From Guillardia theta CCMP2712 (Eukaryota; Protista; Cryptophyta), in the NCBI RefSeq assembly GCF_000315625.1, contig NW_005434621.1:392246-455776 (forward strand): a stretch of DNA of 63,531 nucleotides, read 5' to 3'. Every line of letters starts with the position of its first letter. The stretch's first letter is position 1. Below the pieces are notes generated by a model, which had not been told where the DNA came from, searched no databases, and worked only from the letters and a program-made list of their open reading frames with translations. A program made the position numbers and the translations under genes. Of the stretch, positions 17,575 to 28,624 are shown one piece after another.

Positions 17575-19058
17575 GTCTCAACCTTGCCTCGGTTCACGAC
17601 TCGCTCTCCCTAAGACTGCCTGTCCCCGCCCGCAGCTGCCTTCATCGTCCGATCACGGCTTGCCGCACCATTCGCTCTTGCCCTCGTTTGACTAACGGCT
17701 CGGCATGACCTGAGTGGCATACGGTCCGGTCTCCGGTGCCGGGGACCGGGCCGCCGGTTCGGGAGACCGTCCGGTTCGGGGCCGCGGCCCGTACTGCTCT
17801 CCTAGTCACTTGGAACTTCGGGCCGAGTCCTGCGGAACCCGGCCGTGCAGCTAGTTGAGCGTTCGGTTGGGGGCCAAGGGGGTAGTTGCTAGTGTGGTAG
17901 GGGTGGTGGGGCCAGAGTCAAGGAATGATTCGGGGTCATGAAGGTTTGGAAGGGGGTAGGGGTGAATTTACCAGGGTGGTGTGGAGCAGAAGTAGTTTTA
18001 AAATTCTGTCAGGGGGTGCTGTAAGCGGAAATCAAAGGGGATGTTCTGTAGGGGGGTGGATACGTGCAGTAGGGGATCCCTCGGTAAATCCGAAGTGGGG
18101 GTGAGGTAGTAAAATCCGTGGTACGAGGATGCGCGCAAGAAGAATGTGGGGGTGGAGAAATGTGGGTGGGGGTGGGTGGAGAGCAACATAAAAGTTGTAG
18201 TTCGAGGTGTTCTGGGGGGTGGTGTGTTGGGGTAGTCCTGGTCCTTTTTTTTAACGGATCAGGATGGGTAGGGTATTTTTGGAATCCTGGGGGGTGGGTC
18301 AAACAGATAGCACAGGTTTCAGAAAAAGACGGGTGGGGTAGTTTGAAGGTAGGTACATGATGGAGGGTGGGGTCGTTTGAGTTTGGTTTTGGCATGGCTT
18401 TAGTAGTGAGCATGAAGTTGTTCGGCAATGGCGGAGAATACGTGAGGAGGAGGAGGAAAGGAAGGAGAAGATATAGGAAAGTTCAAGGGAGAAGAAGAAG
18501 AATGAGAGAGACAGCATTTGTTTGTTCTTTTATGTATGTGAGTGAGAGTGCGAGTATGAGTGAGAAAACAATTCTGCCGGGGAAACTGGGAGGGTACACG
18601 AAGACAGCGACACATCTAGCTGGGTCGACGTGAATGAGTGAATGGACAGGAAGACAAGAAATTAAAGATGAATACGTCTAGTGTGTACCAGAAGGGGGTT
18701 CCCGAAGGATATGGTAGACCAATTGTTCTTCAAAGAACATTCTTCTCGGAATGTAGAGCAACTGGAGAATGATAGGAGAATGATAGCATAAAGAGAATTG
18801 TAGTTACCCACACGCTGGTTGCTAACTTATGCCAAACAGATCTCCTATACTCCTGATCAGCTCAAGTTTGAATCCCCTGCATGTGCAGCATGCGGAGTTG
18901 TGTAAGCATGCTCCTATGGGGCATGCTTATTACGGTCCATCTCGAGCCATGGGAGCGCAAATAGTGCAGCGTCAATCTGAAGGCGAGCTATCTGTACATG
19001 AACAGGTTTAGTGCGAGAGCAGCAGTCTGTTGACTGTCTGTCCGAAGAACTGCTCGAA

Positions 19059-22000
19059 ATGTCCGAGGAGCCAGAAACCATGAAGGTTGCTGAGTCCCAG
19101 GCGGTTGAAGAGGACAAGGGAGGCGGGGAGCTTCCTGGAATGATACCTCCAACCGAAGACAACACGACTGCCGATGACACGGCAGTTCATGAAGACCGTG
19201 CTAACGCGAACATCGATGGTGATGAGGATAAAGCACTGAGTGGACATGAAACCCCGCCTGAGGCTGCAACTGACAGGTCTGACAACGGAACAGGCACTGG
19301 GGCGCACACTCCTGATACGCAGCCATCAAAGTCTGTCGAACATTCCATGGGGACAGAGAACGATGATGAACAGAAGAAATCTGGGGAGCAGTCTTTGCAA
19401 GACGGCAGCCATGTTGCGGGAGAAGTGAACGTGACAGAAAGCTTAGCACCGGTTGGATCTGCGTCAACATCGCCTCCTGAGGGCAGTGAAGTGCAAACTG
19501 CCGCATCTACAGACACACCTTCTGATGAAACATCAAAAACACATGAAGCATCAGAGGGAAGCAAGGCTTCTGATCAAGTAGAGCGTTTGAACACTAACAA
19601 TGGGGAGATCGCGTCGGAAATCAAGGCAGAAGCGCTACCTCCTGGCGCCAATGGTACAGAGAAACAGCAGAACATAACGAATCAAGGAGAAGAAATCAAG
19701 CAGACCGTCCCCAACGGTCATGATGGAGTGAACTCGAATGGTGATCAAGGCAATGGTACTGATTTGCAGCATACGAATGGAAACCTAACGCACAGAGAAG
19801 GTGGCAACGGATATTCGTCGAAAGAGGCGATTGATAAAGTGAATGGAGGCAAACAAAGTGGCAAGGCTTCCCGGCTCGTGAAGTTGATCCAAACAAGCAG
19901 CGCAGATTCTATGGGTGATTTGTTGGACGAGGATGATGGATCGATGAAGTTGAAGCGACGTTCTTCGTTGTTCGCTGGTCTCATGTCAAGGGGTGCGGGC
20001 ATACGACGAAGGTCTTCAAACTTCTCTATTGATTCAATGTCCAGCGTGGCCACGAAATTGAGTACGATTCAAACTATAGCATGGTTGAAAGTCAAGGCCA
20101 AGAAAGCTACTCGCGTCAAGCGGAAGTCGTGCTTGAAGCATGAGTCAGTACTTCAGAGTGAAAGCAACAGCAACATCGCTAAGATCCAGCGAGTCCGTTT
20201 TTCATTACCAAAAAAGAAGACCGTGACTTCAAAATCCATCTTCTTTGATCCGAACCATATCTGGATGGGAAGATGGCATATGTTCTTTGTGTTGCCCCTA
20301 GCCTATGAAATCTGGGCTGGAGGTTTCAGGTTGGCGTTTGCTGATCCAGATTCGAATACTTGGATCTTTGATCTCGATTTGACTTGCGATTTGCTCTTCA
20401 TCGTGGATGCTGCCATCTACTTGAACACAATGATCATGGTCGGAGATGAGAGCCGTCTCCAAGGTCGCAATGAACATGCTATGTATATCAAGGACAGAAC
20501 TATCATTGCTAAGAAGTACTTTCTTCATGTTTTCCCCTATCAGCTTCTTCCAGGTATTGTGTTCTTAAGCATCTCAAAACCATCAACACACATAGGGGTT
20601 TGGTGGGTCATAATGTTTCTTAGACTTCTCCCAAGGGCCTTGCGCTTATATCGATACTTCCGATCCATGGAGATCAATCTCGAAGTGTCTGTCAACCAGC
20701 TTCAACTCGTAAAATTTAGTCTCGTCATCGCCATGGCAAGTCACTGGATTGGCTCTCTGTATTTTTGGGCTGCCAGGATTCATCAGGTGGAAGAGACATG
20801 GTTGTATGAGCTGGATACAATCTTTCCTTTGTATTCGATGAACTCAAGCACCATAGCACAGAACTACCTCTTGTGCCTCTACAAAGGATTCGACGGATTG
20901 TCTTCCATAGGATACATCCCCATTGTCCCAAACAACAGCTTCGAAATGGTTTTGAGTGTTTTGGTGATGTACAACTCCATCTTGATCTCCGCCTACATCC
21001 TTGGGAGTCTGTTCCACTACCTCCTAGTGTCTCAAAAAGATCCTCTCACTGAGGCCCACAAGAAGAGAATGACAGATGTGATTGCGTTCGCTGAGGCTCG
21101 TCGACTCGCCCCAGCTGTAAGGAAGAAGCTGATTCAGCACTTTGAGTTCCAATACAAGAAGAGCGTGCAGCGAAAGGCGTCAGCCTCTCTCAAGTTGCCG
21201 CGATCTCTAGAGGTGAAGGTTGCAAACTCAAGGTTCAGACCGACAGTTGAGAAGTGCTGCAAGCCGGGAGGCATCTTCTATCACTGCAACGCACAGTTCC
21301 TGAACAACCTGGTGACACACCTTCGACCTGTCTTCTTGATGCCCGGAGATCAGTTCATTCGAGCGTCGGAAATGGTTCTCGAGCTTTCTTTTGTGATTGA
21401 TGGGCATGCAGAAGTTGTGGATGAGGATGAGGTCAAGCGTATCATCCGCTCAGACATCGATGATCCTTCAGTGATTGGAGATGTCTCTTTCTTCCTTGGA
21501 GTGCAGCAGCAGTACTCGGTTCGCGCTCCCCTCGACACGGACATTGAGCTCCTCGTTCTCAGCAAAGAGTCCGGAGAGGAGCTGTTTCGAAACTATCCTG
21601 AACAGCAGGAGCTTGTGAGCAACAACATCTTAGCAAGTTTCAACCTTGACAAGTTTGGGAATGACAAGTCTGACGAGAAGAGTGCTGAGGATGGGGAGGA
21701 GGATCCCGAATACTTGTTCATGAGAAATCTGATCAGAGACACTGTGAAGAGAAGACAGGAGGAGTCATTCTTAGCGCTGAGCTATGCTGCCACTGCCGGA
21801 GACCTTGAGGAGGTGAGGAGAATGCTCCGCAAGGGAGTAAGTGTCAACTCAACGAACTATGACGGCAAGACGATCATGCACATGGCAGCGTCACAAGGAA
21901 ACTATCGAGTAGTTGAGCTTCTGCTGGAGGAAGGAGCTGAGAAGAATCAGAAAGACAGGTGGGGAAATACTCCCCTCCAAGATGCTGTGAACGCGAATCA

Positions 22001-25000
22001 AGGGCCTGTTATTCAGCTCCTCGTACAGTGGAAGTCAGAGCTCAATACCGAGAACTCTTCGGATAGATTGTGCAACGCTGCGAGTATAGGCGATCTCGAC
22101 ACGCTGAAGCTGATGCTTGAGCATGGGCTCAGCCCAAACGTCGGCAACTGTGACCAGCGAACGCCATTGCACCTTGCTTCCGCTGAGGGACACAACAAGC
22201 TCGTCGAGTACATCCTGAGCAAAGGAGGAGATGTGAATGCCCATGACAGGTGAGCGAGTAGGAGAGCTTGAGGACCAAGTGACCTGGTATTGCAGGTGGG
22301 GGAGGACTCCCTTGCAGGATGCGGTAGCTGCGGGGCATGTTTCGATAGCAGAAGAGATCTACACGAGAGGAGGAAACATGTCAGAGACCACAGGGCCTGT
22401 CGAAATTTGCAACGCTGCCACGGAAGGAGACGTGCGGCATCTCCGCTTGCTGCATAGATGCGGAGTTGACCCAGGTGAGGCTGGCTCGCTCCGACTCTTG
22501 TTGAGGCCGCTGCTGACACAAGTTCTCTCAGACACTGGCAACTACGACCAACGCTGCCCTCTGCACCTTGCAGCTTCGAAGGGACGATTGTTAGCGGTGA
22601 ACTTCTTGCTGGGCGTCAGTGCCAACCCGAACGTGAAGGACAGATGGGGAGGAACACCATTGGATGATTGTGTTCGTGGTGGAACAACCCGCCACCTGAT
22701 GTGTGCGAAGTTGCTGCAGTCCATGGGTGGTAAGCTTGGAGTGCTTGCAGACACGGAAGAGGGAAAGCGAATGCTGCAGGAAGTTGCTGCGTTGGACATG
22801 GAGGAAGTGAGAGACGTCGTGAAAGATTTGATCGCCAAAGGGTTGAACAACAAGAAACCCTTGAGGCCGACGGTCCAGCAGTTCCTGGTTGCGCGCGAGG
22901 CATCTCTCGCCCTCCTGAACCCCGTGGTAGAGATGACTGGGTTGTTCCAAAATGTCGGGAACCTCCTGCTGGATAACCAGACACCCTTGCAGCGAGTCTA
23001 TGAAGAGCTCAAGTCAGGCAACTCGGTCGTTGCGAAGATCACAGACAAGGTGAACGACTGTAAGCTCGGGCCGTTGGAGACTGGAGTGCATGCAGTGATT
23101 GAGATCAAACAAGAGGGCGCCGAGAGCCAGACGACGGAGTTCTACCAGAAGCTCGAGAGCGGGCTGGAGACATCGCAGTTTATTCAGAGCTTCGTCGATC
23201 AAGACACGCTGGCGCTCTACGACGAGCTGGACCTTATCTTAGCCAACCTGCAGAAGAAGGAGAGAGACAGCAAATTCGGGAAGCTCAGCCTGGCCAAGGA
23301 CTTCAACAAGTGCCTGATGAACCTCAGTAAGGTCGAGGACATGTGGTGTGCGCTTACCTCTGCCTTCCACGCTGTTGGCCAGCACTCGACGCACCTCAGC
23401 AGCACTCGATCGGGATATGCCCGAGGCGTGTACGTCGATGCCGAGACCTTCCCCGAGTTGCTGAAGAGAATGCAGCTGGACCTGAGCCCCAAGGAGACCA
23501 GAGAGTTGTTCATGAACGCCGTGTCTTCCTTGAACTCGAAGAAGGATGGCGGCCCGCAGACTCAGATTACTTTGCTCACTCCCGAGATTTTGCTGTGCAA
23601 GTGCGAGGACTTCAGGGAGCTGGTGCGGAAGGAGTGCGATGAGAACTCTGTCAAGCTATCGACGCTTGTGCGATCGCACGTTCTGAGGAGCCTCTCGTTT
23701 GCTCATATCCAGTATCTCGCCTGGAGATGCAAGAAGATAGTTCTGGAGGAAGGAGGAAAGATCAAGCCTACTGAGCCTTGCATGTACCTAGTGAGGAAGG
23801 GGAGGGTTCGTGGGATGTTCCACAATGATGGGAAGGACATTTGCCTTCGCTTGGAGTACGGGCCCAACACGATCTTCGGAGAAGTTTGGCTCCTAACAGG
23901 TTTCGCCCCCGTCCTCATGATCAGAGCTCAGACTCAGTGCGAGCTGATCCAAGTGAGCAAGCGCGACCTCGCCGTCATCCTCCAGGTGAGGTTCAGCTGA
24001 CCCGATACCATGACGCTGAGATTGTCTTGACAGGCCAAGGCCCAGCTTATCGTTGTGCTGGCGAATGCTCTGACGAAGAACTCCGAGTTCGACACGTTTG
24101 AGAAGGAGATCTTGAGAGACTCGATCAACCACAAGCTGGCGCAGGACCCGAGGGACTCTGAGCCTGGGGTAGAAATATCGGAGTTGGAGCTCAACACCAA
24201 GGTGCTGATGGACAGCATCCATGAGCACTTCGAGCCGAATCGGACGGAGAACGTGAACTTTATCGCGCTGATCGTCTCGGTCTGGCGAGGGATCGCAAAG
24301 ATCAACAACAGGCGCAGCAAGTACTACCACTGCGAAGACGTTGCCAACATGAAGCAGCTTGTGGACCAGGGCATTCACGTGATTGAGAGCGCATGGGACT
24401 TGTTTGCGGCAGGTCTACCGACCGTCGAGTACGACGAGGTAGCTGGTATCAAGGACTACCTGGGAGAGGTGAGAAAGAGGCATCGTGCGCTCCAAGCTAC
24501 CCCTGACGAGCCGCAGGTGGGACAAAACTTCTTCGCGACGACGTTCAACCCTCGAGTCTGCCCCAAGACGATGGACATGAGTGACTGGTTCACCCGCTGG
24601 ACTCGATACATCGACGACTCTGAGTCGACGCAGAACGATACGTTCACAAAGTCGCAGTTCGCTTCCTTCCGCATGAGGCTTCCCGTCCGTGAGAACAGCC
24701 AGGAGCTGGAGCTGGAGGAGGGGAACGAGGAGAAGGTCGGGGATTCAACAGTGCTCTCCATCGCCCAGGTGGATCCCAGCACATACCTGGAGAAGTTGAA
24801 GGAGATCACGGTCTCGATCTTCCATCAGTCCATCACCCCCTGGCTCCTCAACGACGATCTCGCCAACGCCTACGAGCCAACCTTCACCGCCATCGTCGGC
24901 AACACCATGAAGCCCATGACCCGAGCTCAGGTTCTCTTGACAAGCATCCCAGGACCTGTGAGTCTGACTTGCTCGCCAGGTCCCTGCGTTCTTGTCGCTG

Positions 25001-28000
25001 CTCCTCCTCGACTTCCACAGCGAGATCTCCAACGTGCATGTGGATGAGTTCATGCAGGTGAAGCAGTTCGATGCTCCCTGAGCCCCTCGTGACTCTCTTG
25101 CCAGACGTTCTCCCCTGACGGCAGGAAGGCGACTTCCATCTCGTTCCCGGACATTGAGCGAGTGCTCTACGACAAGAACGCGACAGTCCTGAGGGCTGAC
25201 CGTCTCTTCATCGGCGATTGGCGCTCGGCCCTGAACCCCCTCTCTACCCCCGTGCGGGCTTGGAGGACTTTACAGCAGTTCTGCGCGGTGTTGTACTTCT
25301 TGCAGATCCCAGCTTGGATCTCTTTCCAGCCATACTCGTCGATGACGACTCCCTCCCTCCTGATCTTCGACCTCCTCCTCGACATCTGCGTCTTCACCAA
25401 CCTGTTCGTATGCTTCAACGTCGCCTACATGAACAAACAGTGAGTCGCCGACTGAGGGTGCCAGTCGTCACTGACCTTGACTGACTGCAGGTCGCGATGG
25501 GTCACCGAAAGAACCAAGATTGCCCGGCACTACCTGTCTCACGACTTCTGGCTCGACTTGATCTCCGCCGCTCCCCTCGACTGGTTCGGGTGGTTGAGTG
25601 GTGCGAGCATCGAGATGTGCAGCTGGTTCCGGTTGCCCAAGATGCTGTACGTGATCAGCGTCAACAAGGACTCCAAGATGAGCCTCCTCAAGTGGAACAT
25701 GACCTACCCGCACTTCAAGCTCGCCCTCTACATCTTCGGTGTCCTCCACGTAACCTCCTGCTTGTGGTTCTTGCTGGGCCGGCGGGGAGCCGGAGAGCTG
25801 CTGGGCGAAGCCACCTGGTCAGTGCTAGATGAGTGATGAGTGACGTGCTGACGTTCTTCTCAGGTATTCCCCAGCTGACGTTGCAGTAAGGCGGGCAAGC
25901 AGCATACATCTCAGCGGGGTCATCGACTACTCCGGGTACGGCATGCTCTACTCGAACCATTCGGGGACATGGGACCGCTACCTGCTGTCGCTCTACTGGA
26001 TCTCCAGCACGGTCTCAGCTACCGGAGTGATCGGGGACATGTTTCCTAAGAACTACGGGGAGATCGCCTACACCATCTTCCTGCTCTGCCTCAACCTAAC
26101 GCTCTTCAACTACGTCATCGGGGAGATCTCAGCTAGCGTCCTCAAGGGAGACGAGAAGCTGGTGAAGGCGAGGGAGGAGTTGGGAGCCGTCGAGAGCTAC
26201 CTGCAGGGGTTCGACCTGCCCAACGAGCTCAAGGTGGAGATAAGGAGGTACTTCGAGGGGACGTCAGGAGGAACAACGTTCATCAGCGCGTCTGAGATCT
26301 TCGACTCCATCTCCCACTCTCTGAGGTTGGAGATCTCCTCCAACATGACACGCGAGTGCCTGGAGAACGTGTCGCTCTTCCAAGGCTGCAGTCCCCAGCT
26401 CAAAGCCAACATCCAGGGGCTGCTGAGGGAAGCTCACTTCGGCTCCGACGAGTACCTGTACCAGTCGAACATGATGGCGCATGAGATGTACTTTGTCGTC
26501 AACGGCTTCGTCGATCAGCTCGTGCAGGACTCGGAAGGGTTCTCAATCCATGACAAGTCTGTCGGGCCTGGCGGAAGCGTCGGCGACCTCTCCTTCTTCT
26601 TCGGTGTCCGCCACATCAACGCCGCTCGCGCCAGCAGCCGCTCGGGCGCCATCTGCCTGCGACTGGTGCGATCGCAGATCATGCCGGTGCTCAAGGCGTA
26701 CCCCGATGACGAGGAGATCGTCGCACAGAACGCGCTCAAACAGTTCCAGCTGACGAAACATGCTCGCAGTGCAGCAGGAACGAGCCGGTACGCGAAGAGC
26801 AATGCAAGCTTTGGCACACACGGGACGCAACAAGGGGATCAGTTGCAGGAGGACGAGGCGGCCAAGGAAAAGAAGGACGACGAAGAAGTGAGCCTGCCGA
26901 CTGACTACGAGCACACGGCCAAGGACGACAACAACTTCGACGCCATCATCCTGTCCAACATTGAGCAGAAGGTGGCTGACCTGAACCAGCGGAGGAAGGC
27001 TGAGCACATCGCCGCCTTCTGTGGGGCTGCAGCTCGTGGGGAGCTGGAGAAGATGCAGAGGTTCTTTCGGATCGGCCTCCATGTCGACGAGACGGACGCC
27101 AACGGCAGGACGGCGCTGCACGTCGCAAGTTGCGAAGGTCAGATGGAGGCGGTGAAGCTGCTGCTGGCCCACCGCGCTCTCGCCTCCATCAAGGACAAGT
27201 ACCACAACACGGCGCTCAACGACGCCGTCCGGCACTGCCAGGATGCCGTTGCTGCGACACTCAGGGCTCAGGGTCAGAGCTTGAGCTTCCCTGGACAAGA
27301 GGGAGGGATCCTGATGTGCAAGTACGCGTCTGCGGGCGACAAGCTGCAGATCCTGCGGATGCTGGCGAACGGCATCGAGATCAACGTGAGCAACTACGAC
27401 TCGAGGACCGCCCTCCACCTGGCAGCGAGTCAGGGCAACACGGCAGTGGTGGAGTACCTGCTGGAGAAGAAGGCGGAGGTGAACGTCAAGGACAGGATGG
27501 GAGGAACGCCGCTCGCCGATGCGCTGCGCCATGGCCACGTGCAGATCCAGTCGCTGCTGAGGAGCGCTGGGGCTCAGCTGCTGGGGATGGACACGGCAGT
27601 CGCCATGTGCAACGCGGCGGCGGTAGGAGACGTGGACACGGTCCAGGCGCTGATCCGGAACGGAGCGAATCCGGACGCCGCGGACATGGACAAGAGGACG
27701 GCACTTCATCTCGCTGCTTCCAACGGGGAGGTGACGGTCCTGGACTTCCTGCTGCGATGCACCGACCGCAACATCAACGTGAACCCTGTGGACGACCTCG
27801 GAGGAACGCCGCTGGAGGACGCCTACCGCCATGACCAGCCCGTCGCTATCGCCATGCTCGAGGCGGCCGGCGGGCTGCGCATGGGAGACTCGCAGCTGCT
27901 GGCGATGGGGGAGCAGCAGAAGAAGGACGTGGAGGAGTTCCAGAAGAACGACAGGCTGCCGAGGGTGACGGAGCTGGTGGAGCAGAGCACCGAGATGAAG

Positions 28001-28624
28001 ATCCAGATCTGGGTGAGGGGGCGATGCGGCAAGCTGATCCCCAACAAGCTCAAGGTCATCGCGTCCTCGACGGAGCAGATGCTGATGGAGATGAAGATGC
28101 TGATGGTGAAGGTGCAGCAGCTGTGGGACAACATCGACGATATCATGTCGGGGAAGGAGACCCCAGCTGACAAGGTGAAGGACATCAAGCCCACCCAGAG
28201 CTTCCTCTTCAGCCAGCTCAGCGGCAAGATCGAGCTGGAGGAGGTGCGGCAGATGGCCGTCAACTTCCTGCAGACCCTCTGGTCGTGGCACGAGCCGGTG
28301 AATCAGATGCTGGGCATCATGTCGGAAGACCTCCCCTCCAACCGCGTCGTCCGCCTCACCTCCGCCGAGTATCGCAGGCAAGCTGATCGCGTGCTGGAGC
28401 TTTTCAAGAGGCTGGTCGTGTCGACTCAATTCTTCGACCAGAACCTCCGAGAGATGCTCAAGGTACTCGACACTTCCTCCTGCTCCTTCCACCTGCCCTT
28501 CCCCCTGATCCTCCTGCTCTTCCTCCTGCAGTCCCCTGCCCCTGTTGCTCCTGCTCGTCTGACACCCCAGCAGGTACTCAACATCGTGATCGATGACATG
28601 AATACCGTAACTGAGGAATACTAG
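19059..28624 (+). CDS. Two-module (2x6TM) CNBD-family cation channel with ankyrin repeats (tandem plant Shaker/AKT-like architecture)
   Basis: Module I has 6TM (S4 LRLLPRALRLYRYFR, pore LSSIGYIPIVPNN), C-linker, CNBD and 9 ANK. The linker carries an extra CNBD. Module II has 6TM (pore TVSATGVIGDMFPKN), C-linker, CNBD and 9 ANK. The ORFs join in frame via short introns (e.g. 22250-22295, 23987-24033, ~24931-24979, ~25058-25105, ~25440-25490). Confidence 0.85.

Follow-up and report, generated by a model that had tools for sequence, protein, structure and literature searches.

A 63,531-nucleotide (nt) stretch of the genome of the cryptophyte Guillardia theta CCMP2712 (contig NW_005434621.1, positions 392,246 to 455,776 of the forward strand; hereafter the window, whose own numbering is used throughout) contains a gene on the + strand for a tandem channel of the cyclic nucleotide-binding domain (CNBD) superfamily, in which two six-transmembrane (6TM) units, unit I and unit II, follow each other. 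Its two pore loops carry different non-canonical selectivity filters in one polypeptide, and each filter is kept across the family. We consider it reasonably probable that the units of this expressed two-repeat CNBD channel alternate in a dimer and that its pore discriminates weakly, if at all, between K+ and Na+.

Two filters on one spliced mRNA

The pore loops were located by alignment to channels of solved structure.
20865 to 20936, + strand: pore loop I, YLLCLYKGFDGLSSIGYIPIVPNN, with SIGYI at 20904-20918 (HMMER alignment to SKOR 8jet)
25979 to 26053, + strand: pore loop II, YLLSLYWISSTVSATGVIGDMFPKN, with TGVIGD at 26021-26038 (HMMER alignment to SthK 6vxz)

In pore loop I, which has the canonical length, SSIGYIP aligned to ATVGYGD of SKOR: the G-Y is kept, Thr is replaced by Ser, Val by Ile, the second Gly by Ile, and Asp by Pro. 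In pore loop II, SATGVIGD aligned to TTIG-YGD of SthK; the first Gly and the G-D are matched, and the two Gly residues are separated by one residue more than in SthK. The same one-residue gap in pore II was obtained in a BLAST comparison with a canonical channel of the same genome (VSTLGY-GDVLP, on contig C61), and the distance from the YW of the pore helix to the P-x-N motif was 15 residues in all 25 pore-II sequences of the family, compared with 14 in SthK. Because the SKOR, SthK, and C61 alignments and this spacing agree, SIGYI and TGVIGD occupy the true filter positions. Neither loop contains T-x-G-[YF]-G; pore I reads S-I-G-Y-I, and pore II reads T-G-V-I-G with the extra residue. The T-I-G-E acidic ring of metazoan CNG channels is also absent, with Glu at that position in neither loop. 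Both motifs reported in the first-pass annotation lie on the + strand, its coordinates proved right to ~10 nt, and its claim that the two filters are non-canonical and unlike each other within one polypeptide was borne out by the HMMER alignments, the open frame, and a spliced transcript contig.

Once eight introns are removed, an open frame extends from 19011 to the stop codon at 28622-28624. The nine exons comprise 3073 codons from 19011, and the first ATG, at 19059, gives a protein of ~3057 amino acids (aa). The joined spliced translation was used to check the frame and stops; similarity searches used exon or open reading frame (ORF) sequences or natural full-length proteins from Hanusia. 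In the joined frame, there is a single, terminal stop, SSIGYI lies at codon 631, and ATGVIGD lies at codon 2206. Before joining, pore I lies within the ORF at 19011-22253 (1080 codons) and pore II within that at 25943-28624 (893 codons), and between the two units, only changes of frame were found, without a long closed stretch.

Transcript evidence for the span 20800-26300 came from Logan contigs of runs X1, X4, and X5, which belong to three studies. The eight joints were identical in the three runs, and all resolve to GT..AG introns of 46-57 nt.
22250-22295, 22475-22531, 23986-24033, 24469-24516, 24931-24979, 25058-25104, 25440-25490, and 25818-25863, + strand: the eight introns (transcript joints in X1, X4, and X5)

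Since eight introns have been spliced out, these contigs derive from spliced RNA (the runs are labelled 'RNA?'). One spliced contig of 3801 nt, present in X1 and X5, runs from 21897, in the unit-I ankyrin repeats, to ~26089, past pore II, and overlapping transcript contigs extend the coverage from 21897 back to 20800. Across 20800-26300, the sole difference between the transcript contigs and the genome was a synonymous A>T at 26098 in run X4. The contigs of the three runs agree at the filter codons, which are therefore not assembly errors. These results establish that both pores are encoded on one mRNA of one expressed, correctly spliced gene. The raw RNA run X19 yielded one read only.

The A>T at 26098 changes CTA to CTT in the sixth transmembrane segment (S6) of unit II, near the end of the contig, and may be a strain difference. 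The intron 5' ends are GTGAG or GTGAA in six of the eight cases.

A reading as two separate genes was suggested by the Hanusia phi protein P0001 (1716 aa), whose end, ...EGDVSLVPGH, matches a stop-ended alternative frame near 25140. This reading was ruled out, as the spliced contigs remove the intron at 25058-25104 and the frame goes on. P0001 reads through the equivalent of this intron, shifts frame, and then ends; at 25058-25140, the window itself encodes EGDFHLVPGH followed by a stop in the alternative frame that P0001 uses. P0001 looks like the product of an intron-retaining transcript that encodes unit I and the linker only, and a transcript of this type could be either unspliced pre-mRNA or a real short isoform.

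Conservation of the filters in paralogues and relatives

A six-frame search of the organism's own assembly (87.1 Mb, 669 contigs) revealed eight loci, each with a unit-I-like segment and, 5-7 kb further downstream in the same orientation, a unit-II-like segment. The filters were compared in 22 pore-I and 25 pore-II sequences, and ~30 external homologues were found. The canonical G-[YF]-G was present in 0 of the 22 pore-I and 0 of the 25 pore-II sequences. In pore I, G-Y is followed by a non-Gly residue in 18 of the 22 homologous sequences, and none of the 22 has the second Gly. Of all filter residues, the first Gly is conserved best, being nearly invariant in both pores.

The four close paralogues (66-81% identical) read SS[IM]GY[IVL][PA][IV][IV]P[NQ]N in pore I and S[ASG][TN]GVIGDM.P[KQ]N in pore II. 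In a second subfamily, on contigs C135, C85, and C7, pore I reads LGYD[IV]G[IL]PNN or LAYDLGLPSN and pore II reads NG[AM][VI]G[DA][ML]IPQN. The divergent eighth paralogue, on contig C115 (106000-120500, loci L027 and L028; 37-39% identical), has far more eroded filters, namely APNSYRKPAQN, without a Gly, in pore I and SAIGNSTIYPKN in pore II. The external homologues (38-72% identity) read [SA].GY[FVI][PSG][IV]VP.N in pore I, with one GVF and, in Cymbomonas, LAYENIVPGQ, and T[ST]TG[IV][IL][GNSAE]DM.PK[NS] or YGIVGDMLPAN in pore II. The alignment of orthologous pore loops, which the first-pass annotation had proposed as its check, showed the deviant motifs in Hanusia phi and in every other relative, and a canonical filter in none. 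Because these motifs recur in seven further loci and ~30 external homologues, the deviation of the filters is more than chance.

The single-chain arrangement also recurs. Three proteins have both pores within one ORF, namely P0023 (2763 aa) and P0024 (2812 aa, marked complete), from Hanusia phi transcripts, and P0026 (2440 aa), a metagenomic protein from ENA. In Hanusia P0025 (1984 aa), the orthologue of the tandem gene, pore I is identical and the frame stays open into S1-S2 of unit II. In another assembly, contig L029 carries, downstream of a unit-I ORF, one uninterrupted ORF of 1379 codons that comprises the linker tail and the S1-S6, CNBD, and ankyrin repeats of unit II, and a contig of a third assembly has the same order of unit I and then unit II. 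In public databases, the Hanusia protein bears no more specific name than 'cyclic nucleotide-binding domain-containing protein'.

Among the four close paralogues, the ratio of nonsynonymous to synonymous substitution rates (dN/dS) was 0.12-0.24 in unit II, with dS of 0.6-1.1; in unit I, dN was 0.21-0.29 and the synonymous sites were saturated. The paralogues are old duplicates under purifying selection. Private degeneration or a pseudogene was ruled out by the conservation, the expression, and the dN/dS values. A general drift of filters in the lineage was ruled out by the canonical GYGD channels elsewhere in the same genome (LCTVGYGD on C48 and VSTLGYGD on C61) and in Goniomonas, the cryptophyte sample of an earlier survey, for which only canonical single-repeat channels with TVGYG and TTGYG were listed (PMC7576140, Table S2).

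Within the gene, the GC content rises markedly, from 47-50% in the part of the window that encodes the N-terminus and unit I (18000-22000) to 57-62% in the part that encodes unit II (24000-28000). Codon-usage constraint or gene conversion could explain this rise in the 3' half together with the unsaturated dS. Opposite the unit-II ankyrin region, there is an antisense ORF of 649 codons (26543-28492, - strand), most likely a side effect of the high GC content of the coding strand.

In the green alga Cymbomonas tetramitiformis (L030, contig LGRX02035196.1, 4243-29426), a unit-I-like gene, P0009, whose pore reads LAYENIVPGQ, comes first; next to it lies a copia-type retroelement in the opposite orientation, and after that, again in the orientation of P0009, a second gene of the Ion_trans-CNBD-ankyrin type. 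The pairing of the units may predate their fusion or reach outside the cryptophytes.

Domain architecture and comparison with known channels

The features of the tandem channel other than its pore loops are as follows; CNB denotes cyclic nucleotide-binding, cNMP cyclic nucleoside monophosphate, and CNBHD the CNB-homology domain.
20616 to 20663, + strand: unit I S4, FLRLLPRALRLYRYFR (HMMER alignment to SKOR S4)
21333 to 21596, + strand: unit I CNB-homology domain (Pfam cNMP_binding, 21.9 bits, under the cut-off; aligned to the SKOR CNBHD)
21777 to 22720, + strand: unit I ankyrin repeats, split by the introns 22250-22295 and 22475-22531 (Pfam Ank_2, E 4.5e-37; Ank matches in exon 3)
23773 to 23982, + strand: third cNMP-binding-like domain, in the linker (Pfam PF00027, 36.6 bits, E 4.4e-9)
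24034 to 25057, + strand: linker exons 4-6, without a Pfam match and conserved in Hanusia and L029
25105 to 25817, + strand: unit II S1-S5, exons 7 and 8, with the intron 25440-25490 (transcript joints and translation)
26435 to 26659, + strand: unit II CNB-homology domain (Pfam, 25.7 bits; SthK alignment)
27323 to 27802, + strand: unit II ankyrin repeats (Pfam Ank_2, E 3.3e-38)

In HMMER searches, the best solved-structure match of unit I (491 aa) was SKOR 8jet (E 2.5e-26; query residues 5-468, from S1 to the CNBD), and that of unit II was SthK 6vxz (E 9e-19; residues 8-270). Pfam gave cNMP_binding plus a weak Ion_trans match in the tandem channel. In both units, the similarity covers S1-S6, the C-linker, and the CNBD, as is characteristic of the CNBD-channel superfamily, and each repeat is a full AKT/SKOR-like subunit with S1-S6, a C-linker, a CNB-homology domain, and ankyrin repeats. 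From S6 of unit I to S1 of unit II, the linker comprises ~1,300 residues. No Pfam match was obtained for linker exons 4-6, the C-terminal tail, or the 649-aa antisense ORF.

The S4 segments differ between the units. That of unit I, FLRLLPRALRLYRYFR, has five Arg residues at spacings of 4, 3, 3, and 3 residues, whereas that of unit II, WFRLPKMLYVISVNK (25624-25668), has two basic core residues (R and K) and one Lys at its end. The Arg-Thr/Ser of the phosphate-binding cassette, by which cNMP-gated channels are recognised, appears to be missing from all three CNB-like domains. The unit I cassette, IGDVSFFLGVQQQYSVRA (21474-21527), lacks the Arg-Thr pair and reads QQQYSV where SKOR has PQPYTV; the linker cassette, FGEVWLLTGFAPVLMIRA (23875-23928, GFAPVLM), also lacks the pair; and the unit II cassette, VGDLSFFFGVRHINAARA (26579-26632, RHINAA), has Asn in place of the phosphate-binding Arg of SthK.

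The order of 6TM, C-linker, CNBHD without the phosphate-binding Arg, and ankyrin repeats is shared with the plant channels SKOR, GORK, and AKT1; among solved structures, these matched unit I best, in alignments that extend from S1 to the CNBHD. These channels differ in being single-unit subunits that form four-fold, K+-selective tetramers with TxGYGD, and a KHA domain was not found in the Guillardia tandem channel. Pore I resembles HCN channels (CIGYG) in its LYK/LFK pore-helix motif and in its x-I-G-Y core; HCN, in contrast, keeps the second Gly, forms a homotetramer, and binds cAMP. TPC and K2P channels are dimers of two-repeat subunits with a two-fold pore and non-identical loops, and TPC has one degenerate voltage sensor, as the S4 of unit II also appears to be. 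Unlike the Guillardia protein, they belong to other families without a CNBD or ankyrin repeats, and the K2P loops keep G-x-G.

The first report of tandem CNBD channels with two repeats, published in 2020, concerned dinoflagellates and oomycetes, whose channels have TVGYG-like filters in both repeats (PMC7576140), and a full-text literature search for 'two-repeat tandem' channels returned this paper only. Tandem channels were reported there only in SAR lineages and none for cryptophytes. Clade-wide departures from TVGY/FG are rare, with metazoan CNG channels the sole exception in that survey of eukaryotic Kv-like and CNBD channels (PMC7576140). The oomycete and dinoflagellate channels likewise have two 6TM-CNBD repeats in one ORF and polypeptide, and their repeats are ~23-25% identical to each other and form separate first- and second-repeat lineages (PMC7576140). 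They differ in that their filters are TVGYG or close variants, whereas both filters of the Guillardia gene are deviant; the Guillardia gene also has ankyrin repeats in each unit and a third CNB-like domain, and an ankyrin domain is not mentioned for the tandem channels in PMC7576140. CNGK, the cGMP-gated K+ channel of sperm, also joins CNBD-channel repeats in one polypeptide but has four of them (PMC7576140). The two-repeat CNBD architecture is thus already known, and what is new is that both filters are deviant, that each unit has ankyrin repeats, and that there is a third CNB-like domain.

Assembly, selectivity, and gating

Pore-forming 6TM units assemble four round one pore, and the two-repeat TPC and K2P channels do so as dimers; an alternating dimer is therefore the simplest assembly for the tandem channel. 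By analogy with TPC and K2P, two polypeptides would pair with units I and II alternating round one pore, which would give a two-fold rather than a four-fold filter. In two of the loops, a bulky residue takes the position of the second Gly, and in the other two, a residue is inserted; these changes should block the canonical upper K+ sites, and with these sites blocked, a weakly selective monovalent cation pore like that of HCN or NaK is predicted. According to PMC9822992, four stacked K+ sites require TxGYG, and the TVGDGN of NaK provides two sites and no selectivity; in HCN, with CIGYG, small changes near the GYG bring the filter down to two sites and weak selectivity (PMC7576140, discussion). 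Judged by its filter residues and their conservation in relatives, the tandem channel is probably not K+-selective in the classical manner. Strong Ca2+ selectivity also seems unlikely because the first subfamily lacks an acidic ring of the CNG or CaV type and has the pore-II Asp only.

As judged by sequence motifs, the Arg-rich S4 of unit I would be the main driver of gating; given its five Arg residues, compared with the two basic core residues of unit II, voltage is probably sensed by unit I. Direct gating by cNMP is doubtful because the phosphate-binding Arg-Thr pair is absent from all three cassettes, and the three CNB-like domains would have a structural or regulatory role as homology domains instead of sensing cNMP, in the manner of the CNBHDs of plant Shaker channels. 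Co-folding of Hanusia P0023 residues 248-370 (two copies) with residues 1812-1953 (two copies) gave 0.09 and 0.14, compared with a mark of 0.34, and weighs neither way.

Some points weigh against an alternating, weakly selective channel. Trk/Ktr/HKT transporters retain only the first Gly and yet prefer K+, and the length of the linker leaves room for units I and II to lie in different pores. The survey of CNBD channels also states explicitly that selectivity is not readable from sequence (PMC7576140). The same protein in the same assembly might instead prefer K+, with the first Gly, conserved in all four loops, forming a short Trk/Ktr/HKT-like or HCN-like filter; we hold this to be rather unlikely, though it deserves serious weight. 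The first Gly is indeed the best conserved filter residue in both pores, the S-I-G-Y of pore I could provide the carbonyls of sites S4-S1, pore II retains the YW pore-helix motif and usually the G-D, and the nearest solved relatives, SKOR, GORK, AKT1, and SthK, are K+ channels. To our knowledge, however, all K+-selective members of the 6TM/CNBD superfamily keep G-[YF]-G. The premise of the first-pass annotation that K+ selectivity needs TxGYG holds for these members but is too absolute as a general rule, with Trk/Ktr/HKT as an exception. Furthermore, the canonical GYGD channels alongside in the genome suggest a different role for the tandem channels, and a clade-wide deviation has been described only for the non-selective metazoan CNG channels (PMC7576140).

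A different assembly, in which four polypeptides form a unit-I homotetramer pore and a unit-II homotetramer pore tethered by the long linker, would fit the completeness of the units, each of which has a C-linker, a CNBHD, and an ankyrin domain of its own; the ~1,300 residues between them; and the annotation of the Cymbomonas units as separate neighbouring genes. We nevertheless judge it improbable: all two-repeat channels known to us (TPC and K2P) place both repeats in one pore, the order of unit I and then unit II is fixed in eight of eight loci and in other taxa, and the repeats have diverged in a repeat-specific manner, a pattern that in other tandem channels was read as co-evolution of the halves (PMC7576140). 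Non-conducting relic pores in a protein that serves as a scaffold or sensor would be consistent with the far more eroded filters on C115 and with the N, S, A, or E that some homologues have in place of the second Gly in pore II. However, sequences that are only 38-60% identical still share the pore helix, first Gly, P-x-N motif, and S6, unit II is under purifying selection, and the gene is transcribed and correctly spliced, which makes relic pores very improbable indeed.

If the alternating dimer is true, two different filter solutions would lie inside one pore, an asymmetric case. The tandem family would be a second, independent natural case of a clade-wide departure from the canonical filter besides the metazoan CNG channels, and with it, the range of two-repeat CNBD channels reaches outside the SAR lineages. 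It is conceivable, although on present evidence unlikely, that this eight-gene, single-chain, two-fold CNBD-ankyrin family of cryptophytes and related marine protists has co-evolved complementary non-K+ filters with a selectivity mechanism unseen in characterised 6TM channels, for example a preference for Na+ or divalent cations without an acidic ring. For channel biophysics, the family allows the number of glycines and binding sites that a K+-type filter requires to be tested. For protist physiology, it adds candidate cation conductances for excitability or motility in cryptophytes, a group from which optogenetic channels have already been obtained.

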